This document shows positions 4,572 to 56,094 of a DNA stretch of 64,000 nucleotides, piece after piece (the first letter of the stretch is position 1; the number at the start of each line of letters is the position of its first letter). The notes under the pieces were generated by a model, which saw only the letters and a program-made list of their open reading frames with translations, was not told the DNA's origin and did no database searches. Made by a program: the position numbers and the translations under genes. The stretch comes from Octopus bimaculoides. Its lineage: Eukaryota. Where the stretch lies: assembly GCF_001194135.2 (NCBI RefSeq), contig NC_068983.1:106315942-106379941 (forward strand). Direction: 5' to 3'.

Positions 4572-7470
4572 CTAGAATAAAAAGAAATCTCAAATTAAAA
4601 AATAAAACCAAACAAACAGACAATATAATACTAAACAGTATAAAAGTAAACACCATTAAAAATATTAAAACAAAATAGATAAATGAAAAAAAACAACAAC
4701 TTAATATTGGTTTGGGGGTGCTTCTGGTGAGATATAAGATGTTGTAACACTGGTGTCTCAGAAACCCTTGGACTAATGAAGTAAATGTGTTATGAACACT
4801 TATTTGTCATGAAGGAGAAGCTGTTCTCTAGTGGCAAACACAACAATGATTAGCATATTCATTTTCAAATCTGTCAGAATACATTAAGAATGAATATGCC
4901 AGTTACTGTTCTGAATATTACTGTTTACTGTGTGTATGAGGATTTATTATTGGTTGGCAGATATCAGCATGGATTAGTGAACAGTTTGTTCATTGAAATT
5001 CAATTTAATATGTTAAAAAGAAACGAAACCTATCAAGTAGTTAAAATTGGTGTATTAAAATTTCTGAAATCCAAAAGCTCAAAAGGTTTAATTACTATAA
5101 TTAAATGAATAGCAAGAGAGCTGACAAAATCGTTAGCACATTGGACAAAATGATTCACAGTATTTTGTTAGTTTTTACGTTCTGAGTTTAAGTTTTGCCA
5201 AAGTCAATTTTGCCTTTCATCCTTTCAGAATCAATGAAATAAGCCCCAGTCAAGTACTGAGTTTGATGTAATCAACTAGCCTTAAAAATTTAAGGCCTTG
5301 TGCCTACAGAAGAAAATATTATAATCAGATGACAATATCTTATTCTAAAACAGCAATTAAAGATATTTTAGTTTTCCTTTGAAAAATGCTGAAACTTAAA
5401 ACAAAAAAAACTGCTATCATCATTTAATGTCTGTCTTTCACTTAATAGCTAATAGTAAGTTTTCACTTACAAGGTTTATGTTTTCTTCAAGTAGAACTAT
5501 TTGCTACATTCCGAATGCTTAAGGATATAATGGTTACCCTTACAGATTAAAGAGCCTATCCAATTCTGATAAATTATTTTAGTATTTAATACAGTCTTGA
5601 AATAATAGTAAATGACAAAAGCTAATGTAGTCATGTCACTTGTCAGAAATAACAGCCAAGTCTCACTCCAATCTCAAGAAAAGGGAAATACATTAGCTAA
5701 TGTTGTCCTAGATATACTTTGTATATCTTTGAACACAGAATACTGACATATTTGTCCTGAGAGAACTTCTCGTACAGCTGCACAGTGCTAAGAATAGACA
5801 TACACATATCATTAGCAGACAAGAATTGTCCAGTATAGGTGCCAGAACTGCTAGATCACATGATTTCAGCATACTGCACATCTTCAGTGATAGGTGTCCA
5901 CTTAAGCTTGATCAAGGTCAATCTGGGATTTAAACAACAAAATTAAATGCTATTCCATTTTCGTTTCTGTTCCATTATCTTGCTTTAGATAAAAATATGA
6001 AATTAAAATCAGATCAGCACCACTTGGGAAAATTGTAGAACAATCTTATTTTTAGAGAATATTCCACAAATTGCAGTAAATGAATATTTAAAAAAATATT
6101 TCTATTTTTTAAATATTTCACAAATGAGGGACAGATTGACAAAATCACTAATGCCAGTGGCATGGAAAAAAAAAGCATTCAGTACACTCTGTAAAGTGGT
6201 TAGCATTAGGAAGGGCATCTAGCCAAAGTTGACATTAGATCCAAATAAAATCTTGCAGCTCACTGGATCCTGTCAAATTCTTCAACTCATGTTGACATGG
6301 AAAGTGAATGTTAAGTGATGATGATATTAAATCTTTCCTTCGTTTCTCATATTTTATATAGATTATTCCTCATGATTCTAATACATAAATCATCATCATC
6401 GTTTAATGTTCTCCTTCCATGCTAGCATGGATGGGATGGCTTCACAAGAGCTGGCCAGGCAGAAGCCTGCACCAGACTTCAGTGACTGTTTTGGCAGGGT
6501 TTTTACAGCTGGATGCCCTTCCTAACACCAACATACAACTGCATTAAATAAAACAGCTTACAAACATTTCTTTCATAACAAACGTGTTCTTTCACTAATT
6601 AACAAGCAACATGCAAAAATGAAATGACCAGATTTGAAATAGCCACTACACAACAGACATAACAAGATTGTGCCATTTTCAGAAAGTGCTTGCAAGGAAT
6701 TAATTAAAGATTTTCAATATATTCTTTTTCCTTGATTTTGATGTCAGGATAATAGAACAGTAGTAATCTATCAATAAATGAATTGTCACACTCATGAAGA
6801 AAGTGCTATCATAGCAATAAACTTAAGCAATGTGTATCTAGTTTGTATTGTAATTCAGTATGTGTACATATATAGTTTACATAGAGGAGTTACAAAATTA
6901 TAAGTAGCAGAACATTTTAATTAATATATGGCTGAATATTAAATGTGAATGAACTCAATTTAGATGAACACAAAGGGATATCATATCTTCTATCTTTTAT
7001 CATTTATTTATGGCCATCCTGGGGCACTTCCTTGAATGGTTCTTTTTTATTATTATTTGAACAAATTAACCCCAGTACTTACCTTTTTCCCAAAACCTGG
7101 TACTTAGTCTATTGGTCTCTCTTCCCCAGATAGCTATGGTATGAGGACATAAACAAACCAACAGTGGTTGTCAAGTGGTTCAGGACAAACACAAAAACAC
7201 ACACATACATGTAGATATATACATGACAGGCTTCTTTCAGTTTTCATCTACTAAATCCACTCACTTGACTTTGGTTTGCCTGGGGCTATAGTGGAAAACA
7301 CCTGCCTAAGATGCTGTGCCAACAGTGTGACTGAACCTGGAACTATGTGGTTGGGAACAAACTTCTTACCATACAGTCATGCCTGTAGCTATTAATACAG
7401 TAGTCCAATTTTATTTTAGAATTCATGAAAAAAAAAAAAATGGCAAAAAAAAGAGAGAGGAAATACTTGC

Positions 7471-8046
7471 CCGGTTATCTAGAACTCCTGGCAAGCTGAA
7501 TTCTGTGTTATCAGTAACACAACTAGACGTTAGATGACTTTCAGAACAGTGGTCATCCTCACTATTATATTCGTCAGAAGATGTTGCACTGGTCTGTGAA
7601 GTCAACAGTTCACCTGAGTCATTTAAAGGGTCCCTGAGGAGACTATCTTTTTCAACATTTTCCATTTCTTTTTGAAATTCAGGATTAGTACAAAATGTGG
7701 TATCGCAGTTGGTTTGAATGGTAGAAGAACTATCATCAAATTTGACGAGGTACATGTCGAGGTTGATAACACTAGGTGCACTGAAACTTCGACCGTGCAT
7801 TCCACTGCCAAGATTTTGCTTGAAGGGCAAGTTCTGCTGTTGTTGGTAATGCTTTAGTTTAGTATTCAAACCATGAGAGTCCCGCCCTATTGTATCATTT
7901 GAGACTCGACTGGAATATTTTGATGTACGATGAGATAATTCTCCCTGAGATGTCCCTGGCATGAATATTTCCTCAGATTTTAGTGGTGATGCTAAAGAAA
8001 TATGACAATTCCAGCCAGCTTCTAAACCCATTTTCTCTGAAAATAC
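7471..8046 (-). CDS. TMEM94: TMEM94 long coding exon (VFSEKMGLEAGWNCHISL...GVLDNR)
   Basis: TTTCAG| acceptor, CGG|GCAAGT non-canonical donor, 576 nt = 192 codons; overlaps supplied ORF 7423..8031. Confidence 0.93.
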
Positions 8047-11632: not shown

Positions 11633-12047
11633 ATCATCATCATCATCGTTTAACGTCCGCTTTCCATGCTAGCATGGGTTGGACGATTTGACTGAGGACT
11701 GGTGAAACCGGATGGCAACACCAGGCTCAAATCTAATTTGGCAGAGTTTCTACAGCTGGATGCCCTTCCTAACGCCAACCACTCAAAGAGTGTAGTGGGT
11801 GCTTTTACGTGTCACCCGCACGAAAATGGCCACGCTCGAAATGGTGTCTTTTATGTGCCACCCGCACAAGCCAGTCCAGGGGCACTGGCAACGATCTCAC
11901 TCGAAAATCCTACGGGAGCCAGTCAGGCGGTATTGGCAACAGCCACGCTCAAAATGGTGCATCTCATGTGCCACCCGCACAAGAGTAAGTCCAGGGGCAC
12001 TGGCAACGATCTTACTTGGCTTGCCGGGTCTTCTCACGCACAGCACA
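11633..12047 (-). mobile_element. SINE-like family C with (ATG)n tail, young copy with internal duplications
   Basis: Near-identical to 36778-37300 and 40490-40712 over about 190 bp; older copies at about 6390, 10355 (+), 14545, 52560 and 60720. Confidence 0.8.
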
Positions 12048-12327
12048 GGACAAATACTGACCCAGCAGTGAATCACAAGAACACCAGACATAAGTTTCAC
12101 CCTTCTTTGGGCTTGTCAATGATGTGTGTCCTGCAGTCACAGCATAGACAAAGTCTGTCACTGCAGATATATAGCGAATGTATTATCCATTGTTTGCTAT
12201 AAATTACTTCTCAAAGCCACGTAAATTTTTTTTTTAATCAATATAATGGAGAGACCCTACAAAGAATTACCCCTCTATCCTACATACCTTAAAAAGATTA
12301 CCAAAGCTTTACAAAATACAGACTTAC

Positions 12328-19714: not shown

Positions 19715-21124
19715 AAATCTGTAACTCAATGATATAAAATATATAAATTCATAATATACAAATATATCATTTAATATTGGTTTCACAATTTTGGCACAAG
19801 GCCAGCAAGTGTAACAGATAGGTAAGTTGATTACATTGACCCCAGTCCTCAACTGGTACTTATGTTATCAACCCTGAAAGGTTGAGAAGCAAAGTCAACC
19901 TCAGTGGAATTTGAACTCAGAATGTAAAGACAGATAAACTGCTGCCAAGCATCTGCCTAGTGGGCTAACAATTCGGCCAGCTTGTTACCTTAATATATCA
20001 TTTAATATTCGTAGATATTTTTTGTAAGGTAGCAAGCTCGTAGAATCATTACTGTGCCAGGCAAAATGCTTAGCAGCATTTCATCTGTCTTCATGTTTTG
20101 AGTTCAGATTCTGCTGAGACAGACTTTGCCTCTCATTCTTTTGACTTGATAAAATAAGTACCGGTTGAACATGGGAGTTGATGTAATCGACTTAGCCACT
20201 TCCCTGAAATTGCTGGCCTTGTGCCAAAATTTGAAACCAATATTAGTAGATATTTTGAGAAGCCACAATTTTATTAACCATATGGATTTTTAACCATATT
20301 AAACATGGTTTTTTTAGTTTTCACAAGTATTCAAAGTTGCTTAATCTCATGGCTCAGCCTTGATCAAGCAGAATGATGGTCAAAGTTATTGCAGCGATGA
20401 TGAACCAGTCACTTTATATCTAGTATTGCATTGGCCAATGAAACCTTTCAATTTTAAGATTTGTGAGTGATTTAGCCGATATTTCTATCAGGTCAAGCAA
20501 CTTTGTAGAAGTTCCCTCATTATTCACAGCTATCAGACTATTGTACCTGCAGCCATTGCATCACCATCAGCAGCATTATCATCATCGTCAGCATCATTAC
20601 CATCATTGTTGTTTTAGCATCCACTTTTTCATGTTTACATGGATCGGACAAATTGTTGAGGTAGATATTCCATGGCTGGATTATCTTTCCCGTCACCAAC
20701 CCTTATGTGTTTCTAACAAAAAAAGGTAAGATTTCCCTTTGGTCAGACATATATTCACGAAATATTGGAAACAAAGGACACCGTTTGCACAACGGTGATG
20801 CTTGCTTACAACTATCATATAATGGGGGAAAAAAAAAAAAAAAAAAAAAAGAAAAACAGACACAGACACACAACAGCTTTCTTTCAGTTTCCCCACCATA
20901 AAATCCACTCACAAGGCTTTGGTCAGTCAGTGACTATTGTAGAAGCACCAGCCCGAGGTCTGAACCCAAAACCATGTGGTTGGGAAGTAAACCACACAAC
21001 CATGAGCTGTACCTATGAGCAGTATATTCATTGTAAATACAGTTGCTATTGCATCTGAATAATGGATAAAATCTCTGCATGAAATTTATAAATAAACATT
21101 TATACGCTATTGATAATTGATTAA

Positions 21125-21359: not shown

Positions 21360-21481
21360 CTTCTATTTAGTACTGCAACAGTGCCCTCATTTTCCAGAGC
21401 AGCAGTTGCTACATGGTCAGTGAACTGAGAATACCAAGTAGCAATACTTGTATTACAGGTGTTAGCTAAGATATTTAATCC
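21360..21481 (-). CDS. TMEM94: TMEM94 coding exon (GLNILANTCN...QFTDHV...VLNRR)
   Basis: ATTAG| acceptor, AG|GTAGGT donor phase 2, 122 nt; GLNxLxNxC...FxDH motif. Confidence 0.9.
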
Positions 21482-21708
21482 CTAATAAGAGATCAATATG
21501 AAATAAGAAAAAAAATAAAATAAAATGAATAAATATTTCTTTAAATAATTACAGTAATTTTCAGGACAAAATAATTTTACATTTCTTAACCAGAACACTA
21601 ATATGAAATTTAATTCTATAAAGAATAGAAAGTTTAGAAAGGTATAACAATGCACTATAGAACAAAAAATGGACTATATACCTGTTGTAACTTGGTTATC
21701 TATAGTCC

Positions 21709-21744
21709 GATGATATTTCGGAATTACAATTCCTTCTTCAGATC
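21709..21744 (-). ncRNA. Minimal type I hammerhead ribozyme motif, mirror copy (sense to TMEM94 pre-mRNA)
   Basis: Exact reverse complement of 21800-21835 in the other palindrome arm. Confidence 0.8.
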
Positions 21745-21799
21745 TTATTTGCTGGAATCTCTGCTATAAACTGTTTATAGCAGAGACTCCAGCAAATAA

Positions 21800-21835
21800 G
21801 ATCTGAAGAAGGAATTGTAATTCCGAAATATCATC
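21800..21835 (+). ncRNA. Minimal type I hammerhead ribozyme motif (intact core)
   Basis: GAT-CTGAAGA-A-GGAAT[TGTA]ATTCC-GAAA-TA-T-C-ATC: stem I GAT/ATC, CUGANGA core, 5-bp stem II, GAAA, palindromic ATAT stem III, AUC cleavage triplet. Confidence 0.8.
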
Positions 21836-23373
21836 GGACTATAGATAACCAAGTTACAACAGGTATATAGTCCATTTTTTGTTCTATAGTGCATTGTTAT
21901 ACCTTTCTAAACTTTTTATTCTTTACAAACAATACACAATGCTTCAAGCGAACTACAATACTCTCTTAATTCTATAAACCATAAGGTCCTCTAGCATTTT
22001 CTAGCTCTTGGGTTGCTTGTGACCTTATCTCATATATGAAGTAAATGTTTAGAAGACTTCAGGATGTATTAATTTCATCACATAATACAGGGACAAATCT
22101 TTATAGGAGACAAGAGTAGGATATACTGAATGGATTTCAGGTAATTACTGACCAAAGGGATGTAAAGAAAAAAAAAAAACTTCATTGACAAGATTTGAAG
22201 CCTGAATAACAAGATTTCTGACTAGATACAGTAAAACATCACACAAACTATTCCATTACTTTGATCGTCCCTTTATTTCATTATTATTCTAAATATTAGT
22301 TGTCTTTATGTGACTTTGACACAAAAAACCCCAACAAAATTCATCAGGAATTTATGCTGATCAGCCACTTTTTTTATACATAGGTCCATAGCATTATGAC
22401 ATTGGCCGTTCTTTTTCTGGCTTTGCCCTTCAAACTAATGACAATAGCTTCTCTTACACATAGTCGAAATGAAGATACAGTAGTCATTCAATACCACCAA
22501 CATTTAAAGTTTGTTTATCTCACCCAAAATGATTGTTCTAGACATATTTTTAAACAAATTCTAAATTAAGAACTATTTCTTTCAAGATACTTATAAATAT
22601 TCAGAGCTATCTTTTTTCTAAGAATTTATACATTCATCACGAATAATAAATTTAAGATGTTACTTTCTTTTTAGAATTAAAAAGAAATTAATCTTGAACA
22701 ATGGTAGACAATTTACCACATTAACTTGAGAACAATGCAGTTTCAAAAACAATGTTAACCTCCTTTCCAATTTTCAATCTAAAAATCAGTAATATTTTAT
22801 CCTATTGTTTTTCTTTTACACTCAGAGATGAGTAGAGAACTGTGTACTGTTTAAGAGTATAATGCTATGGCTTTGGTAAAGTATGAGTTCCAGATCATAT
22901 AGGGAGTTGTACAACTATTTAACTGAACAGTGATTCTCAAAAAAAAAAAAAAAAAAAAAAAAAAAANNNNNNNNNNNNNNNNNNNNNNNNNNNNNNNNNN
23001 NNNNNNNNNNNNNNNNNNNNNNNNNNNNNNNNNNNNNNNNNNNNNNNNNNNNNNNNNNNNNNNNNNNNNNNNNNNNNNNNNNNNNNNNNNNNNNNNNNNN
23101 NNNNNNNNNNNNNNNNNNNNNNNNNNNNNNNNNNNNNNNNNNNNNNNNNNNNNNNNNNNNNNNNNNNNNNNNNNNNNNNNNNNNNNNNNNNNNNNNNNNN
23201 NNNNNNNNNNNNNNNNNNNNNNNNNNNNNNNNNNNNNNNNNNNNNNNNNNNNNNNNNNNNNNNNNNNNNNNNNNNNNNNNNNNNNNNNNNNNNNNNNNNN
23301 NNNNNNNNNNNNNNNNNNNNNNNNNNNNNNNNNNNNNNNNNNNNNNNNNNNNNNNNNNNNNNNNNNNNNNNNN

Positions 23374-23419
<46 letters not shown>

Positions 23420-24345
23420 CACATACATGCATTGATAAGCAGTATTTGCAATTCATGTGTAGAACAAAGAAAAAGTTGCTGGATAATTGGCTTGTCATTC
23501 TTAAATTTGTATTGTTTGTGCTTAATAACTCTCAACCATTCAATCTACATAATTAGAAATATGTACAATTCATATTTATAAAGGGTGGAGGCACTCTAAT
23601 AAATATTTTCAGCTCATTTTAGATCACATTTTGTAAACAATAACATTGCTGATTACAGGTTTTCAACAGACCAGTTACTGGTTCAATGCATTTACAATTC
23701 TAAAAGTAAACGGGGTGCATTTGTACAACTCAGGCAGACCCATAAGAATTTTGTTAGAAAGTGCTGGTTTATTGTTTTGTTTTTTTTTCTCACTCATGTT
23801 TACATCTCTCACCAATATACCTTAATGAAGTTTTTATTTACACACCCAAATATTGAACAGAGAGAATGAGTGCTCAACATCACACTGGTGAATAAATATT
23901 CTTTATTTGTGGGTTTTCATCCAAGATGGAGACAAGCACTAACATCCCACATGGCAGGCTTGATAATTGCTGAGATTACTTTTGGCATTAAACCATATAT
24001 ATATATATATATATAACAGTTTCACCCAAAAGGTGTTGACTAAGCAGAAGCACAAAGTGCTACACAGCGGAAGTGAATTTGAAGGTACATAGTTGTGAAA
24101 CAAACTTCTTAACTAAATAGCCATGTATGTATAACAACAATTATTTAGATAGTTTGCTTTACTGGACACATGGCCAACCACAAAAAACGACTGCGTGATA
24201 AGCATTGAGAAAATTGATAAAGTAGTATAGAGATTTGAAAAGAGAAAAATCCTGACTCCATATTGTACCTAAGCAATAAAAATATTTCTGAAAATAAAAA
24301 CTGAATTATTTATTAAAAAAAAAAAAAAATTCAACTGATATTTAC

Positions 24346-24398: not shown

Positions 24399-25710
24399 CT
24401 GAAAAAGAAATTAACCATTATCATCACCACCACCAGCAGTTTAACCCTTTAGCATTCAGATTATTCTGTCAAATGCAATGCTTTCTCATTCACAATGTTT
24501 TTTTTTTCTTCTTTTAATTAATTATGTATTATCTCAGCTTTGAAATTTTGATGACATGATTGTATATTTTTTAGAAGGCACTGAGAGGTAGGTGTGATAG
24601 GCTGGATCTGGCTGGTTAGAAAATAAAACAGGTAGAATATTTGAGCTGGATATGACTGGTTTAAATGCTAAAGGGCTAATGTTCAATTTTGTTATAGTTA
24701 TGTGTTAGCTGATCTTTTGGTGTCCTGAGTTATTTAATCATGTAAAAGAGGTTAACTGGTAAGGAAGACTATACTGTTTTGGTCATCCTTAGTAAACAAG
24801 TGAAGACAAAGGATTAAGGAAAGTGTTTAATTTCCCTGTGGATGCCCTGCATAGAAATGCTCACTTAACAGTGTCAAGTGCGATGTTTAGTAACTTGAAA
24901 TTCATCACTGGACAGACACAAAAATAAAAAATTCAAAAAATCAATTTCAGTGGAGTTGGATATGGCCCGTCAGTTTGATCTGGATATTCAATACTCACAG
25001 AGAATAATGGATAAAAAAATTGTACAGTAATAACAGCATCGTCATCATCATTGTTTTATGTCTGTTTTGATATACTGCCATGAGTTGGATAGGGTTATTC
25101 TTGCAGTGTCTTATACTTATTGTGGTATTTTATTATCAAATATGCATAAGACAACATCACCCATGAATCTTTGCTGTTGCATCAGTAATACTTTTTAGCA
25201 TGTTTTTATGTTCTGTATAACAGAAACCATTTTATAGCACAGACTGGGATTATGACAATGTAAAAAACCCAGAACAGTCTCCCTTTAGCTCTATCTTTTG
25301 TTCCACTATATAAGAAAACATAGCCATCACATGGAAGCATATATAATTTGATAGCATGACACGTTTCCATTGATTTTAGGTGCCCATGTAGTCACAACCA
25401 AACACAGACACGATCTCACACTTGATGCAGCAGAACATCTAGGATGTAACAGTTGGAGGGAGAAAGGGTTGTATCAGTGCTGGGATGGCATTCATTTCAC
25501 CTGAGTAGAATGGAGCAACATGAAATGAAGTGACTTGTCTTACTCAAGGACACAATGTTCTACCTGGTCTAAGGATTTGAACCTATGACCTTATGACTGT
25601 GAGCCAAATACCTTAAACAACTAAGCTACAAAAAAAAAAACAAACAAAAAAAACAATTTACTTTGAAAGAATTCTACACGAGTAATAAAAATTATCAAAG
25701 TGTCACTGAC

Positions 25711-26020: not shown

Positions 26021-28843
26021 AAAAAAACCCAGTTAATATACATAAAAATATAACTGAAGAGCTATTTTATTTTTTTCTAAATAAACAGTAACCACTATTT
26101 TGTTCTCATTTCTTACAAATGGAAAAAATTTGGTTTTCCATTGATTTATTGAAGACTACACCAAGCACTAACCTAAAGCTGTTTACAATAATAAATATTA
26201 CAGAAGTTATAAAGAACCATTTCTTTCTTTGATAAGGTTTAGCTCTTTAGCATTTAAACTGGCCGTATTAGGCCCAAATATCCTATCTGTTTTATATTTA
26301 AACCGAACAGATTCAGTCTCTCACACCTACACTACACAAAGTCATCAAAAAATAAACAATCACATAATCAAAATCTTGAAGCTACAAGATAATTCACGAT
26401 TAATTCAAAACAATGTTAATCAATAAGCATCACATTTGATAAAGTAATCTGAATGCTAACTGATAAATATAGTCTATGTTGATTCAAGTATGTTCTGGCT
26501 TGCTCTTAAAAAGAGCATTTCTATCAACAGACAGTGTAAATGGTTCAAGTGTTTTGCTCATGTAATGCATGCTTATACAATGAATGATAGGCAAACAGAT
26601 GTGATGCGTACATATGTAATGGGAGTATACCAACTTATGTGAAGCATATATTTTAAGTATATACCAAATGCAAAATGTCTCATGAAGAATATACAACATG
26701 TACAATGAGTGATGCATGAAATGCAAGTTGGATGCAATAAGAGTGCAATGTGTGCATATACATGTGTTTGTGTAAGTATGGTAAATGGACACAATGTGAG
26801 GAGTGTTTGTGTCCTAATGCTATGTGAGTGGTATCAGAGTTTGTTTTATACATGTGTGGTTAAGCTGTCTGCTTCACAACCACATGGTTGTGGTTCAGGT
26901 GGTACTGTGTGGCACTTTGCACAAGCATATTCTGTTGCAGCCCTAGGCTGACTAATGCATTGTGAGAGAATTTAGTAAAGAGAAACAATATAAAGCTTGT
27001 TACATAAATATGACAAGACTGGGCTATAGTAGAAGACACTTGCTCACTGTGTGGCACCTTGGGCAAGTGTTTTCTCCCATAGCTTTGGGCTGACCAAAGC
27101 TGTGTGAGTGGATTTGGAAGACGAAAACTGAAAGAAGCTCACTGTGTGTATTTTTCCATTCTTCCCAAGTGTCAAACTAATACACTTGCTTGTTGTTCCC
27201 TTGCCTGTCTGTCTTTCATTTTCTGTACATTTGAACTATATATATATGTATATGTGTCTTTGTGTGTGTGTGTGTCTCCTTGTTTTGACATCATGTGATA
27301 GCTGTAGATGAGTGTTACTGTCATACAAGCAATATCAGTCATTTCCAATATAATCTGCGAGAAAATATCTGGCCATGGGGAAGTATTAGTTTGCTTGGAT
27401 ACAGGTGAAGATTGGTAACTGAAATAGCATCTTGTTAGCACAGATCTTTCTCAAATAAACTCTGTCTGACTCTTACAAGCATGTAAAATTGGATATTAAA
27501 TGATGATGACATATATAAAGGCGTGTGTGTGTGTGTGTGCTGCGTTGTGCATGTGTGTGTGTGCTGTACTGTGTTTGTGTGTGCACACACACAAAACACA
27601 CAGCATGCACACACACATACAACACAAAGCTCGCACACAGAGCACACAACACCGCGTGCACACACACACACACAACACAACACAGCACACGCATGCGCGC
27701 ACACACACAATTTGCACCACATGACAAGTGAGATGAAAACTCCCTGACTTGAAAAACAGTTATGAGTTAGCAAAATGAAGGGCATCCAGCTGTAAAAACA
27801 ATGCCTCAATGGTATGCATTCGTCTAATCCATACTAGCAAGGGAAAAAAAAAACACATAAAACTACTAAATGAATGCTCATAGAGAAGAGTTCTGTCATA
27901 AATGAGGTTGATTACTGAACTTGTTTGGACATCATTGTGAAGGCACTTGGCCTAGTGGTTAAGGTGTTGCACTCACAATTGCAAGATCCTGGTTTCGATT
28001 CACAGACCAGGCGGTGTGTTGTGTTCTTTTGCAAAACACTTTGACATTGTTCTGTGATCACTTTCATATCTGACACGTGGTACATCATGTACTTGTACAG
28101 GCAATGTCAACTTGATGGAAGGGGTGAGCTAATGTAAAACACAAACATTTGATCATTATAAAGAAATGAACTGTGCCGGTCTCATCTGTCATCTACAACA
28201 GGAAAATCTATGACAGAACATCAAAATACAATGAAAGCAGATGCAAAAACTGACCAAAGTAACAAGTCCAAATCCAACTATAAACAATCTGGTGTGCTTT
28301 TGCAGCAAAGCAGCATACAATATTTTTTTTTATCTCAATGAGGCATGACTGTGGTAAAAAGATTGCTTCTTAGCCACATGATTCTGAGTTTAATCCTACT
28401 GCGTGGCACCTTGGTTAAATGTCCAACTATAGCCTTGGGCCAAAACCAAAGCACTGAGTGGATTTAGTAGACAGAAACTGAAAGAAGCCCATCATGTGAG
28501 TGTGTGTGTGTCTGTTTGCACCCCACCACCACTTGACTACTGGTGTTGGTGTGTTTACTTCATTGTAACTTAGCAGTTCGGCAAAAAATCTGACAGACAA
28601 GGCTTAAAAAGAAAAATAAGTACTGGGGTAGATTAGTTTGACTAAAATACCTCAAGACAGTGCCCCAGCAGGGTCGCAGCCAAATGACTAAAACAAGTAA
28701 AAAAAAATAAGACATCAGTCATCTTTCCCTGTTGACAGGTTTTTTATATGAAAAGTTGCTAGATTTACAAATGGGGGGGAAAAAAAATCAAAGCAAAATA
28801 AATTTTTTTTTTCTAATAATACATGTGAAAACACAGTACTCAC

Positions 28844-31439: not shown

Positions 31440-31955
31440 TTCTATATTTAAGAGATGAGGAATTGTTTACATTATTTACATTTGACGGATATTTGTCCTC
31501 ATCTTGGCTGTTGTCAATGCAACATTGTGGCTAATATACCTTCCAGCCTTCATCAGGTGTCTTGAGCAAATTTCGAACCTGGGTTCTCATTCCTAAGGTA
31601 TTTTTCAATATTATTATCATTCAGGTCACTTCCTGGAATTGAACTTGGAACCTTGGGGTTAGTAGCCCGCGCTCTTAACCACTACATGGGCATATGGCAT
31701 AGTGGTTAAGCGTGTGGGCTACTATCCCCAAGATTCCGAGTTCGATTCCAGGCAATGACCTGAAGAAGAAGGTGAATGATGATGAAGATAATAATAGTGA
31801 TGATGATGATGACAATATCGAAAAATATCTTAGGAATGAGAACCCAGGTTTGGAATTTCCTCAAGACACCTGATGAAGGCTGGAGGGTATATCAGCTGAA
31901 ACGTGTTATCAACAAACAAGATGAAGACAAATATCTGTCAAATGTAAATAATGTA
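31440..31955. mobile_element. Palindromic element: back-to-back tRNA-like heads, each followed by a decayed hammerhead motif
   Basis: Inverted arms about CATATG (31691-31696); A-box TGGCATAGTGG and B-box GTTCGATTCC on +; CTGATGA...GAAAC motif at 31866-31907 (+) and its mirror at 31517-31560 (-). Confidence 0.65.
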
Positions 31956-32026: not shown

Positions 32027-32140
32027 CTTAATTTCTTTGGAGACTTCATAGGCAACAAACAATCTTGCTTGCCCATAAAAGTTAATTAGTTTCCAAAATA
32101 ATGGAAACACCATGGGAACCAATGGAAGTACAGTGTGTAC
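32027..32140 (-). CDS. TMEM94: TMEM94 coding exon 7 (VHTVLPLVPMVFPLFWKLINFYGQARL...)
   Basis: CCCCAG| acceptor, AAG|GTGAGT donor, 114 nt; LPxxPxxFPxxW...GxAR motif. Confidence 0.92.
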
Positions 32141-32279
32141 CTGGGGAAAGAAATATGAGAAAACATGAAAATGTATGTTATTAATGTGACTTAGGTGTTT
32201 ATAGATGATACTGAAATATCACTAGTTATTTCATCCAAGTTCAAGCTATCTTTCTCTAATCAGTAATAAATAAGTAATA

Positions 32280-34676: not shown

Positions 34677-35610
34677 CTGAAATCAGAAAAAATTTCCTCA
34701 TAATAAGGAAAGGTAGAAAAGAGGAGAGATATAGTTGGGTGGGTAGGAAAAAGAAAAAGAAACTAAACGTAAAACAAATTCAGAATGTCAGAAATGATAT
34801 ACCAAATAAAGCATCAAATGTAATCTTTTCATTAGAATTCCAGCTATAAAATTGTACCCACCTGTAGTCTTTTAGACACTCAATATTAAGTATCATTCAC
34901 TGAAACTTATCAGCTTCAGAAAATAGTGGTTTAAATCTAGTTTTCCTGAAATTTAACCTTTACTTCCAAATTTGCTAAACATTAACCAAGCAGAATACAT
35001 TTTTGTTTTTAAAACTTTTAGAAAATTATCAAAGAAAAGACTAGAGTTGAGAATTATGGACTCTTTGATATAAGAACATTTAAAAAAAAAGAATTATTTA
35101 TTAGTTACGTAAATAAATATTTGATGATTTCAACAAGTCCAGTATCTTAGTCAAGAAATTCTGATCGTATAGATATGAGATACTTTGAGGTACTGTAAAC
35201 CCCTCCAAAAGTATCTCCATATAAGAAATGCACACTGTATTTCTTTAAACAGCATGAAGAGTTGTCAATATAAGCTTTAACCCTTTAGCACTTCACTAGC
35301 CATATCCAGCCCAAATATTTAACATGTTTTATTCAAACTGGTCAGATCTGTCCTCTCATAGCTATCCTACAATGTCACTCTAAAAATAAACAATCATATC
35401 ACTGAAACCTCACTGCTACAAGATAACGCATGACTAATTCAAAACAATGCGAATAAGTATTATATTTGATGGAGAAACTGAATGAATGCTAAAGGGTTAA
35501 AATAATAAAATAAAATATAAATATATTTAAAGCATTTGAGGAATTTTAAATGTCGTATAATGGTGCTGCAGTACAATAAATCAAGCGAAACAATAAAAAG
35601 CAAACTTTAC

Positions 35611-35716: not shown

Positions 35717-37627
35717 CTGTCAGCAGAATAATTAGAATAAAAGAACTGTACAATGATTAATCAGTAAAATTAAAACAATGTATTTTTTTTAGTTTTTATA
35801 ATATATTCTTTCTTAATTTTAGCACAAGGTCAGCAATTTTGAGATGAGGGGGAAGTTGATTACATCAACTCAGTGCTCAATTGGTATTTGTTTTATTGAC
35901 TCCCAAAAGATGACAGGCAAAGTCGACTTTGGCAGTATTTGAACTCAGAATATAAAGAGCCAGAAGAAATGTCACAAAGCATCTCATCTAGAACACTAAT
36001 GATTCTGCCAGCTTGCCTTTTGTTGTTGTTTTTTTTTTATAATATATGTTATAGCATAAATGATGAAAAAAGTCAATATAAAAAAAAAATTTCATTTTTT
36101 TTAGTACAGTTTCAACATTAAATCACATATTTTAAGTAGTTTGGCTAACTTCATAACAGAAAACTAATAAGTCTTCAAATGTAATCTTATTACAATTTCA
36201 CCAATAAGATTGAATTCATCTATAATCATTTACATGTTATACAGTCAGCATAATTCATTGAAACATCAACTCCAGTAAATTGTAACTAAAATATATACTC
36301 TGCTGTCCAAATATTTTAACTTTAACTACAGTGTGTCATTCAGGGTTGGTTCCAACAAAATATTATACAAAGAAGTCAACCATTATTCAAGTGCTGACTT
36401 CAATTTCCATCTTTCCAGATGAAGTCATTTTTGCTTTTTGAGTCAAAACGACTTTGGTTCCATTTTCACATTAGAAATCAAATTAAAGAGCTAGAATTTA
36501 CTGAATCAGCATCAATTATTTCAATATAGCTATTCTTATATTATTTTATTTCAACTATACTAATGTAAAAATTTTCTAACTCAAATATTTACAGAAGGAT
36601 ATCAATTGTCTTTATTTTTCCCATTTACATTAAAGAAATAATAGGTGTGAATCGAAGATAATGTAGTTCCGATACATTATGTTATAAACATATATGAGAT
36701 GATTACAGACTTTGAGCATAGGACTGTTCAACCAGGACTGACCAGAGGCTACTAATCAAAAACTAAATCTTTCCAGATCATCATCATCATCATCATCATC
36801 ATCGTTGTTTAACGTCCACTTTCCATGCTAGCATGGGTTGGACGATTTGACTGAGGACTGGTGAAACTAGATGGCTGCACCAGGCTCCAATCTGATTTGG
36901 CAGAGTTTCTACAGCTGGATGCCCTTCCTAACGCCAACCACTCCGAGAGTGTAGTGGGTGCTTTTACGTGCCACCAGCACGAAGGCCAGTCAGGCGGTAC
37001 TGGCAACGGCCATGCTCAAAATGGTATATTTTATGTGCCACCCACACAAGAACCAGTCCAGGGGCACTGGCAATGATCTCGCTAGAAACTCCTTACACAT
37101 GCCGTGGGCACAAGTGCCAGAAAGGCGACGCTGGGCACAGGTGCCATCACGATTTCGCTTTCGCTTGCCCCAACAGGTCTTTGCAAGCTGAGTNNNNNNN
37201 NNNGCTTTCGCTTGCCCCAACAGGTCTTTGCAAGCTGAGTTTCGTGTCCAATGAAGGAGATGACGTTGGCATGGGTGCCAGTCGTCGAATTTAATTCGAT
37301 TTCGATCGAATGTAGTTAAAATATAGTAGCTAAGGACAGACAGTAATCAAAGAGCATTTACTTCTGCTAATATGAGGCATATGTAAGGAGTGTAATACTA
37401 TGGTAGTGAAACACAAAAATGAGTGCAGAAGACCAAATATGCTGAAGAGAAAGATACATTTTTGGACTATATTTGACAATAGAGAGGACAGATCTGAAAA
37501 CACTAAGATGATGCAAAATCAGATTGACTGGAGATTTGTTGTTTTGCAAACCCATCCAACATTTAAAAAATGAGGTGTTGAGACAATGATGGATAGAAAA
37601 CAAATAAGAAAAAAAGATGAATATTAC

Positions 37628-43211: not shown

Positions 43212-44285
43212 CTGATATAAAACAATAAAAATACATAAACACTTAAGAGAAATAGCAGATAATGTTGAAGACAAAAGAATAAAACATGACATTCTAAAAT
43301 AAAAAAAGTTCTAATTCTAGTTTTTAGCTGTTTCATATTCTGACTGTTAATCAGGGTACAGAATTTCTGTTTACATGCTTGGAAGCTGAGTAGATGAAGA
43401 ATGGGCTCATAGGTGACAAAGACGATGATAGAATGAGGACATCAAAAACTGGGTGGGGAGGAGCCTGGCAAAGTGAATATCAGCAGTATGAGACTTGCAG
43501 TATGTGGTGAAGAGTAGTAATTGTGTTTTAAGCATTCAACCTTTACACAAGATGGGAAGAGTCATTCATTCATTAACTGTTTAGCATTCCAATTGCTTTG
43601 TGAAATGTGATGCTTATTTATTCACATTGTTTTGAATTGACCATGCAGTATCTCATAGCTTTGAGATTTTGATGATGTGACTGTTTATTTTTAAAATGGC
43701 ATTGTAGGGTAGGTGAGAGAGGCCAGATCTGGTTGATCTGAAGATAAAACAGGCAGAATATTTTGGCCAGATTTGGCTGGTTTAAATGCTAAAGGGTTAA
43801 TGTTAAGTTTAAGTTATTTACCCAAACCATATACCGTTGACTCACAGAATATTGGTACCCATGGGAAAAAAAGAAAAAGAAAGAAAAAAAGAGAACACCA
43901 TTACTATCCCAATTCCATAGGATTGCTCATTCTAAATACAGTAACCAAATTCTCACTCAAAATTACACTCCCACCTTAGAAAAAGGACTCTTTGAAATAA
44001 TGTTGCTTGGTTGCAGCATATCTTGGGGAAAAAGTTGGTCATAGCTGGAATCTTCTTAACCCTTTCGTTACTAACCCGGCCGTAGCCGGCCGAGCGTACC
44101 CATTGTTATTTAAATGTATATTTGAACCCAAATCTCGTTAGTACATTCGTTAAAACACCTGATTTCACTTTGCAAACAGTTGAATTATTGTCTCCAACAT
44201 TGTTTGGCGTGATATTTGAATTCAGTGAATTTTGGATGATTTTTTTCCACATTTTTTGCGGCGTTAATTTTTCTCAACTTTGAAG

Positions 44286-44660
44286 ATGGAGAGGAGTTTC
44301 ATGCTATCAAGCAGTGATTCCGAATTTGAAGGTTTTTCAACAGAAGATATGGAGATATCGAAGAAAAGAATGAATGAGCTACAAAAGCACGTGGTGAACG
44401 ATAATAAATTGGATATTTCTGTATCCGAAACTGAAATCAGTGATTCTGAAAGCAGCGACGGCGACAGCGAAGATGATTTTACACCAGAAAAATATTTTAA
44501 AAATATTTTTATTAACAATTTTTCTGAGGAAACAGGGTCTACCCATAGTCTTTCTCAGGAAGCGAAACCTTTAGACTTCTTTTCCATGCTTGTTTGAAAT
44601 GATTACTGCGGAAACAAACCGTTACGCAGAATATAAACAAACCGGAAAAAAAAGATAGCT
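44286..44660 (+). pseudogene. piggyBac transposase 5' fragment (frameshifted)
   Basis: Acidic Ser-rich N-terminus (SSSDSEFEGF...SDSESSDGDSEDD), then KPLDFFSML, and in a shifted frame MITAETNRYAE, typical of piggyBac N-termini. Confidence 0.8.
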
Positions 44661-45343
44661 TNNNNNNNNNNNNNNNNNNNNNNNNNNNNNNNNNNNNNNN
44701 NNNNNNNNNNNNNNNNNNNNNNNNNNNNNNNNNNNNNNNNNNNNNNNNNNNNNNNNNNNNNNNNNNNNNNNNNNNNNNNNNNNNNNNNNNNNNNNNNNNN
44801 NNNNNNNNNNNNNNNNNNNNNNNNNNNNNNNNNNNNNNNNNNNNNNNNNNNNNNNNNNNNNNNNNNNNNNNNNNNNNNNNNNNNNNNNNNNNNNNNNNNN
44901 NNNNNNNNNNNNNNNNNNNNNNNNNNNNNNNNNNNNNNNNNNNNNNNNNNNNNNNNNNNNNNNNNNNNNNNNNNNNNNNNNNNNNNNNNNNNNNNNNNNN
45001 NNNNNNNNNNNNNNNNNNNNNNNNNNNNNNNNNNNNNNNNNNNNNNNNNNNNNNNNNNNNNNNNNNNNNNNNNNNNNNNNNNNNNNNNNNNNNNNNNNNN
45101 NNNNNNNNNNNNNNNNNNNNNNNNNNNNNNNNNNNNNNNNNNNNNNNNNNNNNNNNNNNNNNNNNNNNNNNNNNNNNNNNNNNNNNNNNNNNNNNNNNNN
45201 NNNNNNNNNNNNNNNNNNNNNNNNNNNNNNNNNNNNNNNNNNNNNNNNNNNNNNNNNNNNNNNNNNNNNNNNNNNNNNNNNNNNNNNNNNNNNNNNNNNN
45301 NNNNNNNNNNNNNNNNNNNNNNNNNNNNNNNNNNNNNNNNNNN

Positions 45344-51250: not shown

Positions 51251-53631
51251 GTGGAATTTTTACCTGTGAGTGTGTTAAATTATAAGGCACAAAAAGAAAA
51301 TGACTCTCCCCAGACACAACAGAATTAATTCATAGTTATTTTCCCATTATGCTTCAGTTTGACTGGGTAACATTGCAAGCAAGATTCAAGCTGACTTTTA
51401 ATATATTATAGATGACGAGCTCTGTAGAATTTCCATCTCCCAAATTCACTCAAAGAATTGGTCAACCCAGAGCTACAGTAGTATGCACTTGAGCAAAAAT
51501 GTCGCCAGGGGTACTGAATCCAAAATTATGACGTTCAGAAGTAAACTTCTTAACTACCCAGCCAAGCCTGCACATATAAGTGTGTGTGTGTGTGTGTGTG
51601 TGTGTGTATTTGTTAATTAAACACACACACACACACACTATATACTTGATCTTCACTTCAGCATCATCATCATCATCATCATTATTATTATTATTATCAT
51701 CGTTATTTATTATTATTATTGAAGTGTTCTTTGTCTAAGCTCTTTGACAGAACTTAGACAAAGGACACTAAAATAATAATAAAGCTGAAGTGAAGACCAA
51801 GTATTTTAGTGTGTATGCTTAACTGGCAAAAATATGACCAACCCCAAATACAATATCTGTTGCAATACACAATTTCAGTATCAGCAATCTTGCAAAACAA
51901 ATACATAAATGTGTGTGTGTGCTTGTGTGTGTGTATATATATATATCTGGCTCATGTGCGTGCGACACATGAAATCTTTCGAGCGGGATCATTGCCAGTG
52001 CCCCTGGACTGNNNNNNNNNNNNNNNNNNNNNNNNNNNNNNNNNNNNNNNNNNNNNNNNNNNNNNNNNNNNNNNNNNNNNNNNNNNNNNNNNNNNNNNNN
52101 NNNNNNNNNNNCAAATATAAATACATATGTATACATGTACATACATCTGTCTATACACACACAATTATAATGATTGAACTAGTGTCAATTTCATTATATG
52201 GAATTATCTATTCATTGAATTATAGTCAAAGTGAATGAATACTCCATTGATAGGTGTAACAATGACATGATTTTCAGGGGAGGGAGAAAGAGAGAGAAGA
52301 AGAGAGTCAAATACAAGTCTTCGAAACACTGGTCCAGTCCATTTGATAGGACTCCACATTCACAAGGTTTGGGTTAATCAGTGGATCACCCAAAGTACCA
52401 GTCAGTGGGATTGAACATATACTGTGATTACAAACCAAACTTCTATTTTAACTACTTGACCATGCACTGAAAGTTCATATGGCAAACATAATACACACTG
52501 TATTTTCCATTTTTTGTTGCTGTTTCTTTTTCTCTGATAAGGCATTCATGTAATGAACAGTATTATCATCAACATTTGACATCCATTCTCCATGCTGGTA
52601 TGGGTTGGACAGCTTAACAGAAACTGGTTCCATAGTCAGTTTTGGCTTGGTTTCTACAGCTTCATGCCCTGCTTAATGCCAACCACTTTACAGAGTGTAG
52701 AGGGTGCTTTTTGCATGGCACCAGCACCCACACCAATGTTTTATGTGAATCTGAATAATCTAGAACACTGACTGCACTTTTTCAGAAAGTGATCCGCAAA
52801 ATTCATGGAAACTTTATGGACATCCAAATGTATATTTCATTTTTTATCATAGACTTACTTTGGTCAATGAACTGTGGCCATACTGGGGAACCCCTTCAAA
52901 GGATTCAGATTAACAAATCGACCCCAATGCTACTCTTTTTTAAATTTTAAGTCTGGTACTTTTGCTATATGGCTCTTTTGCTGAACCGCTAAGTTATGGG
53001 GATGTACAACAAAGCAACACTGATTGTCAAGCAGTGGAATGAGGACAAACACAAACTTACACACACACACACACACACAATGGGCTTCCACACAGTTTCT
53101 GCCTACCAAATTCAATCACTAAGTATTGACTGGCTCAGTGCAACAGTAGAAAACACTCATCCAAGGTGTTACATGGAATTGAATCTGAAACCATGTGTTG
53201 CAAAATGAGCTTCTTAACGATGGCAGTACCTATTTAATTTTAATTGGTCTGTAACATATTAGGACATAAAACCTGCTGTGGATCACCAAAAGTTTGGTAT
53301 TGACATCTGCTGTATATGTCTAATCAAGAATACATTACAACTACCACCATTATCATCATTTTACATGTGCTTTCTATATGCTGGCATGAGTGAGACAGAT
53401 CCAAACCATGAGATAATATGAGAGATAAAAAGTATATGAATTAGGTATCTATAAATATAGCTATGGATAGGAGAGCTGAAATTCCAGAAACTACATAATA
53501 GAGTAAAATATTTTACCTCAGCACTAAGCCTAATAGTTTATTGGTAGTTTAGTGCTTGTAGCTGGATAAATGGCAATAAACCAGAAAACTAGAGACTAAA
53601 GTTTCTTTGCAGTATAAAGTTGTGGGGGGGG

Positions 53632-54865: not shown

Positions 54866-55468
54866 ATACAAGAATAAGGGCAGGGAATCGTCAATTAATA
54901 ATAGAATTACTAATTAACAATTTTGCCAAGTAGTTCAGTATGAAAAAACCTTTATCGGTAAAACCATTTATCATCATAAATATACAGGGATTAGCATTGA
55001 GTTGCTTCTCCAACATACTGAAAATTTAGAAATAGCAGTCAAAGAACTACTGATTCTAAACTACAAATTTTTCTCTAAATGGATGGCGATATTTATGGCA
55101 CACATAGAACAAAAAACCGGAGGGGAAAGCATAAACAAAACAAGTCTTTAGTTAATCGGATACGATCGTTTCATGGTTAAGAGAATGAAAAATCCCTATT
55201 CCAATCCTCAGTCCGATATTCTGATAAATTTGAAAGTGAGGATTGGAATAGGGACTTTTCATTCTCTTAACCATGAAACAATCGTATCCGATTAACTAAA
55301 GACTTGTTTTGTTTATGCTTTCCCCTCCGGTTTTTGTTCTATGTGTGCCATAAATATCGCCATCCATTTAGAGAAAAATTTGTAGTTCTTTGACTGCTAT
55401 TTCTAAATTTTCAGTATGTTGGAGAAGCAACTCAATGCTAATCCCTGTATATTTATGATGATAAAAGG
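54866..55468 (-). mobile_element. Fold-back element with hammerhead; probable non-autonomous Penelope-like element
   Basis: Inverted arms 54967-55210 and 55237-55465 with a 26-nt spacer. The 14-bp direct repeat GTATAAGAGTTAAT at 54852-54865 and 56094-56107 flanks the duplicated pair. Confidence 0.6.
55155..55217 (-). ncRNA. Type I hammerhead ribozyme motif (6-bp stem I, palindromic stem III)
   Basis: ATCGGA-CTGAGGA-T-TGG..(extended stem II)..CCA-T-GAAA-CGATCG-T-A-TCCGAT. The stem II closing pair is U-U, which is non-canonical. Confidence 0.7.
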
Positions 55469-55486
55469 GNNNNNNNNNNNNNNNNN

Positions 55487-56094
55487 TAATATACAAGAAT
55501 AAGGGCAGGGAATCGTCAATTAATAATAGAATTACTAATTAACAATTTTGCCAAGTAGTTCAGTATGAAAAAACCTTTATCGGTAAAACCATTTATCATC
55601 ATAAATATACAGGGATTAGCATTGAGTTGCTTCTCCAACATACTGAAAATTTAGAAATAGCAGTCAAAGAACTACTGATTCTAAACTACAAATTTTTCTC
55701 TAAATGGATGGCGATATTTATGGCACACATAGAACAAAAAACCGGAGGGGAAAGCATAAACAAAACAAGTCTTTAGTTAATCGGATACGATCGTTTCATG
55801 GTTAAGAGAATGAAAAATCCCTATTCCAATCCTCAGTCCGATATTCTGATAAATTTGAAAGTGAGGATTGGAATAGGGACTTTTCATTCTCTTAACCATG
55901 AAACAATCGTATCCGATTAACTAAAGACTTGTTTTGTTTATGCTTTCCCCTCCGGTTTTTGTTCTATGTGTGCCATAAATATCGCCATCCATTTAGAGAA
56001 AAATTTGTAGTTCTTTGACTGCTATTTCTAAATTTTCAGTATGTTGGAGAAGCAACTCAATGCTAATCCCTGTATATTTATGATGATAAAAGGG
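55487..56094. repeat. Tandem copy of 54862-55469
   Basis: Appears identical by eye, including arm asymmetries; offset 625 nt; separated by 17 N. Confidence 0.9.
55780..55842 (-). ncRNA. Hammerhead motif, duplicate of 55155-55217
   Basis: Same sequence offset by 625 nt in the tandemly duplicated unit; may be an assembly duplicate. Confidence 0.55.

Follow-up and report, generated by a model that had tools for sequence, protein, structure and literature searches.

A palindromic, hammerhead-bearing insertion in a TMEM94 intron of Octopus bimaculoides, a probable product of Penelope-like element integration

What kind of event leaves a near-perfect palindrome of 307 bp, with a hammerhead ribozyme motif on each strand, inside an intron? 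This question is raised by a locus of Octopus bimaculoides (contig NC_068983.1, positions 106,315,942 to 106,379,941 of the forward strand; the whole 64-kb stretch analysed is hereafter designated the window, and positions are counted from its first letter), in which such a palindrome lies within an intron of TMEM94. An earlier reading of the DNA (hereafter designated the original prediction) had taken it for a very recent, non-autonomous insertion of the type made by Penelope-like elements (PLEs). With a probability of roughly 0.7, we consider that the insertion was dead on arrival, devoid of an open reading frame (ORF), and owed to PLE integration machinery, which used as its template a non-coding element mobilised by a PLE or else a PLE with severe 5' truncation. 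The insertion is a further case of a known PLE kind and represents no new kind of ribozyme or element.

The palindrome that had been predicted, with 153-bp arms, a 1-nt loop and about two mismatches, was reproduced in all of these respects (Table 1). Base-by-base comparison of the arms, which are 99% complementary, revealed exactly two mismatches (21628/21916 and 21757/21787), both of them transitions, and complementarity ends at the arm ends. The two copies of the element stand head to head, with their 5' ends at 21771 and 21773 and their 3' ends pointing outward, the orientation of the left arm (sense on the − strand) being assigned because of the strand of its hammerhead motif. Insertions of PLEs have been described with an inverted, 5'-truncated copy at the 5' end, a tail of 30–40 bp at one end only, and target-site duplications (TSDs) of 8–10 bp (PMC8557442, PMC3846280), and each of these features has its counterpart here. 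Thus, an exact direct repeat of 13 bp, TTAATTCTATAAA, spans the left edge of the palindrome and recurs 40 bp past the right edge, in a geometry in which a direct repeat of at least 13 nt is expected with P~0.003 (18,191 samplings of real window sequence). These two repeats delimit an insertion of 343 bp (21623–21965), that is, the palindrome and a further 40 bp, so that the original prediction holds as to the PLE type of the insertion but not as to its size, which had been given as 307 bp. The duplicated target is short, AT-rich and contains ATT. The additional 40 bp form a one-sided tail in an AC-rich region, leaving terminal fragments of 153 bp without and 193 bp with the tail, and the tail-less copy ends 89–93 nt after the predicted hammerhead cut site. 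The left duplication copy ends in 4 nt (TAAA) that are complementary to the opposite end of the palindrome as well, an overlap that may reflect priming microhomology.

In the 3' arm of each strand the motif reads GAU-CUGAAGA-A-GGAAU(UGUA)AUUCC-GAAA-UAU-C/AUC, where the slash marks the predicted cut. On the + strand it resolves into GAU of helix I, CUGAAGA, the extra A, helix II (GGAAU-UGUA-AUUCC), GAA, A15.1-U-A-U16.1, C17 and AUC of helix I; the copy on the − strand lies on the strand of the TMEM94 pre-mRNA. The conserved core is complete on both strands (C3 U4 G5 A6 N7 G8 A9, G12 A13 A14, A15.1/U16.1 and H17), and the hammerhead that had been claimed for each strand, with all core nucleotides, stems I and II, an AUAU stem III and an AUC site, reads as it had been described. 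Three hallmarks have been reported for the minimal hammerhead ribozymes (min-HHRs) of PLEs, namely an extra nucleotide between 9 and 10.1, a G10.1-C11.1 pair and palindromic 15.2/16.2 (Cervera & de la Pena 2014, PMC4209133). Here, an extra nucleotide follows A9 and is joined to a G10.1-C11.1 pair in a helix II of 5 bp, A-GGAAU(UGUA)AUUCC; positions 15.2/16.2 are palindromic, giving a self-complementary AUAU suited to a dimeric helix III; and the complementarity of helix I, GAU/AUC, amounts to only 3 bp. The 8-bp hairpin that had been noted directly after the motif, GGACTATA (21836–21843) paired with TATAGTCC (21866–21873), was also found; it is mirrored at 21671–21708 on the − strand and is present in the predicted fold of a single 193-nt unit.

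The specificity of this motif was assessed with a min-HHR descriptor requiring a helix I of at least 3 bp, CUGANGA, 0–1 extra nucleotide, a G-C-closed helix II of at least 4 bp, GAAA, palindromic 15.2/16.2, and U-H. Boxes of CTGANGA...GAAA alone occur in the window at chance level (5 found versus 3.95 expected). The full descriptor, a search of the kind suggested with the original prediction, matched just the two palindrome sites in the window and gave 0 matches on either strand of 20 Mb of first-order Markov sequence generated with the composition of the window, placing the chance expectation below ~0.01 per window. Since the two sites are copies of one event, they count as one independent occurrence. 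As controls, the descriptor recovered the hammerhead of PAc, the experimentally studied PLE of Anolis (extra nucleotide, helix I of 3 bp, helix II of 6 bp), and an independent metagenomic min-HHR described below, and nothing beyond these two motifs in 40 kb of fetched loci. The exact ribozyme string was not found in the searchable literature, where two matches proved unrelated. Elsewhere in the window, a hammerhead-like string, CTGATGA-A-GGCTGG...TCAGCT-GAAAC-GT-G, was observed at 31864–31911 (+), about 150 nt from the TMEM94 exon at 32057–32143; with a G at position 17, no helix I and G-U replacing G10.1-C11.1, it could be a chance occurrence or a decayed PLE hammerhead.

A near-perfect palindrome without an ORF might also be a fold-back element or a miniature inverted-repeat transposable element (MITE), that is, a DNA transposon in which the hammerhead-like string is coincidental. 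Indeed, TA can be read at both edges once 2 nt are trimmed per end, and the window contains other short inverted-repeat elements. However, no duplication longer than 2 bp adjoins the symmetric edges, where only the TA dinucleotide is found, and the significant 13-bp duplication is offset by the one-sided 40-bp tail, which is unexpected for a cut-and-paste element. With, moreover, no further copies in 64 kb and a hammerhead match as improbable by chance as estimated above, we regard a DNA transposon as very unlikely. A second concern is the assembly itself, a gappy, AT-rich draft in this window (33% GC, 8 runs of N in 64 kb, the nearest at 22967–23373), in which a repeat that had been collapsed or wrongly joined, or a fold-back chimera, could pass for a palindrome, and inverted PLE structures are known to trouble short-read assemblies (PMC8557442). 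Against such an artefact, the flanks are unique (25–33% identity to each other's reverse complement), the TMEM94 exon reached through the left flank is in its correct order, 2 mismatches separate the arms, and the target-site duplication and one-sided tail are not produced by artefacts of this sort. We consider an artefact very unlikely.

Stop codons interrupt every sense frame of the 343-bp insertion, confirming the predicted absence of an ORF, and the arms hold only ORFs of 39 amino acids (aa); exact look-ups of the 39-aa arm ORF and of the 57-aa junction ORF returned no record. Neither a reverse transcriptase (RT) nor a GIY-YIG ORF, as expected of an autonomous PLE, is encoded within the 343 bp, and no direct repeat of the unit, as expected of the tandem arrangement of retrozymes, occurs in the region or in the 64-kb window. 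Collectively, the target-site duplication, the tail at one end, the head-to-head copies and the distance from the cut site to the 3' end, none of which the original prediction had drawn upon, support the earlier claim of an ORF-less, PLE-type insertion with minimal type I hammerheads, while its description as very recent draws solely on the 1.3% divergence between the arms.

Several observations weigh against the assignment to PLE machinery. Four of the 13 nt of the duplication overlap the palindrome, and its length of 13 bp departs from the 8–10 bp reported in rotifers. Two priming events that are independent of each other would not automatically yield exactly symmetric copies, and this symmetry calls for a further assumption. 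No other copy of the element unit is present in the 64-kb window, and the unit has no similarity to PAc, the sole PLE fragment compared. The descriptor, though composed according to the published definition, was written after the motif had been seen. Furthermore, the covariance-model check suggested with the original prediction turned out negative: Rfam models gave no hit at the gathering score in the whole window, and the Rfam hammerhead models gave no match at E<=10 either in 551 nt or, indeed, in the isolated 61-nt motif. At permissive thresholds, only miRNA-precursor models matched, which reward any long hairpin. The failure of the Rfam hammerhead models is probably due to the missing helix III and the extra nucleotide. 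Judged by its sequence, the motif qualifies as a PLE-type minimal hammerhead by the descriptor, though not by Rfam.

How could the two copies have come to share one insertion? The pathway that we infer, including the joining of the centre, would begin with a PLE endonuclease making staggered cuts, 13 bp apart, in the two strands of the AT-rich target TTAATTCTATAAA, after which both 3' ends would prime reverse transcription of the hammerhead-bearing 3'-terminal region of the element RNA. The top-strand end would start at the proximal start site and give the left copy without a tail, and the bottom-strand end would start ~40 nt further 3' in the AC-rich stretch and give the right copy with its tail. 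The two cDNAs would then be joined head-to-head at the same template position, either where a short template palindrome allowed them to anneal or self-prime, a mechanism put forward for rotifer elements (PMC3846280), or after both had run off at a common RNA 5' end. The outcome would be a 307-bp near-perfect palindrome in a 343-bp insertion flanked by duplicated target, in which the hammerhead motifs had been brought in with the rest of the element. If both strands of a staggered break were extended, the 3' ends would point outward and the 5' ends would meet at the centre, as is seen here. In its fullest form, this proposal makes the locus a minimal natural record of one PLE integration, in which both target strands were extended from different RT start sites and the cDNAs were joined at an identical template position. 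We advance this specific claim tentatively and hold it to be rather doubtful; if it were true, a symmetric (dimeric) PLE complex, or cDNA–cDNA annealing at a template palindrome, would generate the inverted repeats typical of PLEs.

The same structure could have arisen in two steps, if a single PLE-type copy (21773–21965) had been inserted with its target-site duplication and the left arm had been added later as an inverted duplicate, formed locally by replication template switching or by fold-back repair. A symmetry of 153/153 nt around a 1-nt centre is typical of fold-back or template-switch events, and the TAAA shared with the left duplication copy might be microhomology used in repair. The duplicated segment would, however, have had to fill exactly the gap between the 5' end of the copy and the left target-site copy and to stop exactly where tail-less PLE copies end; PLE integration has been documented to produce, as a primary outcome, head-to-head copies of which one has a tail. 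A later inverted duplication is thus less parsimonious than joint integration, and we consider it unlikely.

The original prediction further implied ribozyme activity at this locus, and active hammerheads might cut the TMEM94 pre-mRNA or an antisense transcript, so that the insertion would influence host expression. The core is intact throughout on the pre-mRNA strand, the site lies 137 nt from the 3' splice site, and PLE hammerheads are able to cleave as dimers or with protein assistance. However, a 153-bp hairpin of −250 kcal/mol is predicted for transcripts of either strand, compared with −3.1 kcal/mol for the monomeric hammerhead fold, a difference in stability of ~80-fold, and transcription of the pre-mRNA passes through the complement of the hammerhead before it reaches the hammerhead. 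Each strand carries one sense hammerhead and no second sense copy, so that a tandem dimer cannot form. The helix III duplex would consist of merely AUAU/AUAU, 4 bp that are all A/U and contribute a predicted −1.4 kcal/mol, and in the cofold of two units pairing takes place via the near-palindromic helix II (GGAAUUGUAAUUCC) and not via this helix. Published min-HHRs are inactive as monomers and only weakly active as dimers (PMC4209133), and for the Anolis PLE no reads end at the HHR site (PMC11167929). The implied activity is therefore unsupported, and we infer a lack of cleavage, an effect of ribozyme cutting on the host being highly improbable. As the predicted folds suggest, the hammerheads are probably relics of the element's own RNA, silent at this locus. 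A secondary possibility is that the 153-bp intronic hairpin may be processed, by RNA editing or into small RNAs, and affect TMEM94; a long near-perfect palindrome is a potential fragile site as well as a source of intronic double-stranded RNA.

Table 1. Features of the insertion and the nearest TMEM94 exon (positions in the window).
Feature	Position	Strand	Description
Left target-site duplication copy, 13 bp, TTAATTCTATAAA	21610..21622	.	Exact direct repeat; spans left palindrome edge
Left arm	21619..21771	-	153 nt; inverted element copy without tail; 3' end at left edge, 5' end at centre
Minimal type I hammerhead motif	21709..21744	-	Descriptor match; sequence identical to + copy; predicted cut 3' of 21712
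Centre T	21772..21772	.	One unpaired nucleotide at head-to-head junction of both copies
Right arm	21773..21925	+	153 nt; direct element copy; 5' end at centre
Minimal type I hammerhead motif	21800..21835	+	Direct reading and descriptor; predicted cut 3' of C21832 (C17)
8-bp hairpin GGACTATA/TATAGTCC	21836..21873	+	22-nt loop; directly after helix I
40-bp tail CAAACAATACACAATGCTTCAAGCGAACTACAATACTCTC	21926..21965	+	Extends right copy only; 72% A+C
Right target-site duplication copy TTAATTCTATAAA	21966..21978	.	Exact direct repeat; 40 bp past right palindrome edge
Nearest TMEM94 exon (GLNILANTCNTSIATWYSQFTDHVATAALENEGTVAVL)	21368..21481	-	tblastn; acceptor AG at 21483-21482

The host gene was located by tblastn with a human TMEM94 sequence, which served as a lead only. 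This gave 14 colinear TMEM94 exon matches on the − strand, from 41191 down to 4470, and the concatenated exon peptide retrieves proteins named TMEM94 in Bulinus, Eumeta and Mantella, with no close relative among the matches (best ~80% over 83 aa); protein homology searches with single exons found nothing. The insertion lies in an intron of this gene, the palindrome being 137 nt upstream of the exon that starts at 21481, in agreement with the TMEM94 intron and the distance of ~140 nt given in the original prediction. One TMEM94 exon of ~200 aa (7423–8031, −) starts with a conserved MGLEAGWNCHISL, followed by a low-complexity, poorly conserved stretch that has no homologues on its own.

Other repeats and ORFs were observed in the window. 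A 20-nt inverted repeat, AATGCTAAAGGGTTAATGAA (95%), at 21117–21136/21323–21342 brackets 186 nt just downstream of the exon at 21368–21481, and its terminal sequence recurs as ends of ~30–40 nt at 43763–43802, 24649–24681, 26239–26268 and 35277–35306, which suggests a MITE-like family unrelated to the palindrome. A repeated sequence with the translation ...SPGALA(T/M)ISLE... occurs at least three times (11702–12202, 36968–37294 and 51819–52160) and is probably a dispersed host repeat resembling a short interspersed nuclear element (SINE). Short matches at 55101–55345 and 55726–55970, spaced by 625 bp and flanking a 17-N gap (55470–55486), suggest that sequence around the gap was duplicated, either locally or in the assembly. 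On the strand opposite TMEM94, a 105-aa acidic, serine-rich ORF (...SSDSEFEGFSTEDMEISKKRMNEL...) at 44280–44597 (+), beside the gap 44662–45343, may represent the beginning of a transposase-like gene that this gap truncates.

Compared with known systems, the motif resembles the metazoan PLE min-HHRs in its type I core (CUGANGA...GAAA...UH), the lack of a real helix III, the palindromic 15.2/16.2 (UA) and the short helix I, and it possesses all three PLE hallmarks. It differs from typical min-HHRs in a helix II of 5 bp versus 6–8 bp and a helix I of 3 bp versus 4–5 bp, although the hammerhead motifs of PAc and Drosophila virilis also have a helix I of 2–3 bp. Paired min-HHRs on opposite strands, 100–700 bp apart, are known in Schistosoma (PMC4209133); unlike such pairs, the motifs here sit in a near-perfect palindrome and are only 55 bp apart (21745–21799).

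Scans with a degenerate core pattern extended this comparison to other sequences. No match was found in the viral scan, and the bacterial genome scan gave one match, in a Metabacillus coding sequence, which has no helix I and was dismissed as chance. The metagenome scan yielded one real-looking min-HHR (contig Ga0184641_1241789, L001), unrelated to the present element: AGCC-CUGAUGA-U-GGAAU(GAAU)AUUCC-GAAA-UAU-U/GGCU, whose helix I is complementary though it lies outside the search pattern. The element on this contig (320–765) is likewise a head-to-head inverted pair, with 320–500 (−) carrying the hammerhead and an A-rich block and 636–765 lacking this ~59-nt block, so that the layout of hammerhead element copies is alike in the two cases. 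An AC-rich block of L001 downstream of its hammerhead, CCAAACAATACAAC, shares the 11-mer CAAACAATACA with the tail of the octopus element (P~0.045); kinship through this 11-mer was not relied on, the similarity outside the core being marginal. A second CAAACAATACA in the window, at 23518 (−) beside a gap, was also set aside, its surrounding sequence being unrelated.

The animal non-LTR retrozymes, which carry type I hammerheads, are short elements without coding sequence that are presumed to depend on PLEs for their mobilisation (Cervera & de la Pena 2020, PMC7229834; Li et al. 2026 preprint). Solo copies are common among them, and ~43% of the Xenopus copies are intronic (PMC7229834; Li et al. 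2026 preprint). The present insertion shares with them its short non-coding nature and its type I hammerhead but, unlike their tandem direct repeats with a hammerhead per unit, forms an inverted pair with no direct repeat. Intronic copies of such elements are common, and animal genomes are known to contain minimal hammerheads by the thousand, many in introns. For LINE-1, the twin priming described by Ostertag and Kazazian in 2001 reportedly involves both ends of a staggered break priming reverse transcription, to give an inverted segment flanked by target-site duplications. The proposed pathway is similar in that both break ends would prime and an inverted segment results within one TSD-flanked insertion. 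It differs in that LINE-1 cDNAs come from different parts of the RNA and give an inversion, whereas the copies here share the 3' start region and the end point and give a palindrome.

A further comparison is with the PLE insertions themselves. In contrast to canonical ones, the octopus insertion has no RT/GIY-YIG ORF and no direct pair of pseudo-long terminal repeats (pLTRs), consisting only of terminal fragments of 153 and 193 bp; its duplication is longer (13 versus 8–10 bp), and both copies end at the same internal position. It has no detectable sequence similarity to PAc. With Penelope/Poseidon, Adineta vaga Pen and PAc it nevertheless shares the head-to-head copy, the tail of 30–40 bp on one copy, the short target-site duplication and the AT-rich target. 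With the purified PLE protein of Anolis, cleavage and extension take place on both DNA strands, AT-rich/ATT targets are preferred, and RT starts at two internal sites in an AC-rich stem-loop, the tail being the sequence between the sites (PMC11167929). The octopus locus fits both of these in vitro findings of 2024, two-strand cleavage and extension as well as two RT start sites. In PAc, RT starts 82–89 nt after the hammerhead cut (PMC11167929); here too, the hammerhead lies ~90 nt upstream of an AC-rich start region, at 89–93 nt. As a clean and very short PLE-type insertion, the locus allows the hammerhead of such elements, the junction between the head-to-head copies, the tail on one side and the target-site duplication all to be read at single-nucleotide resolution.

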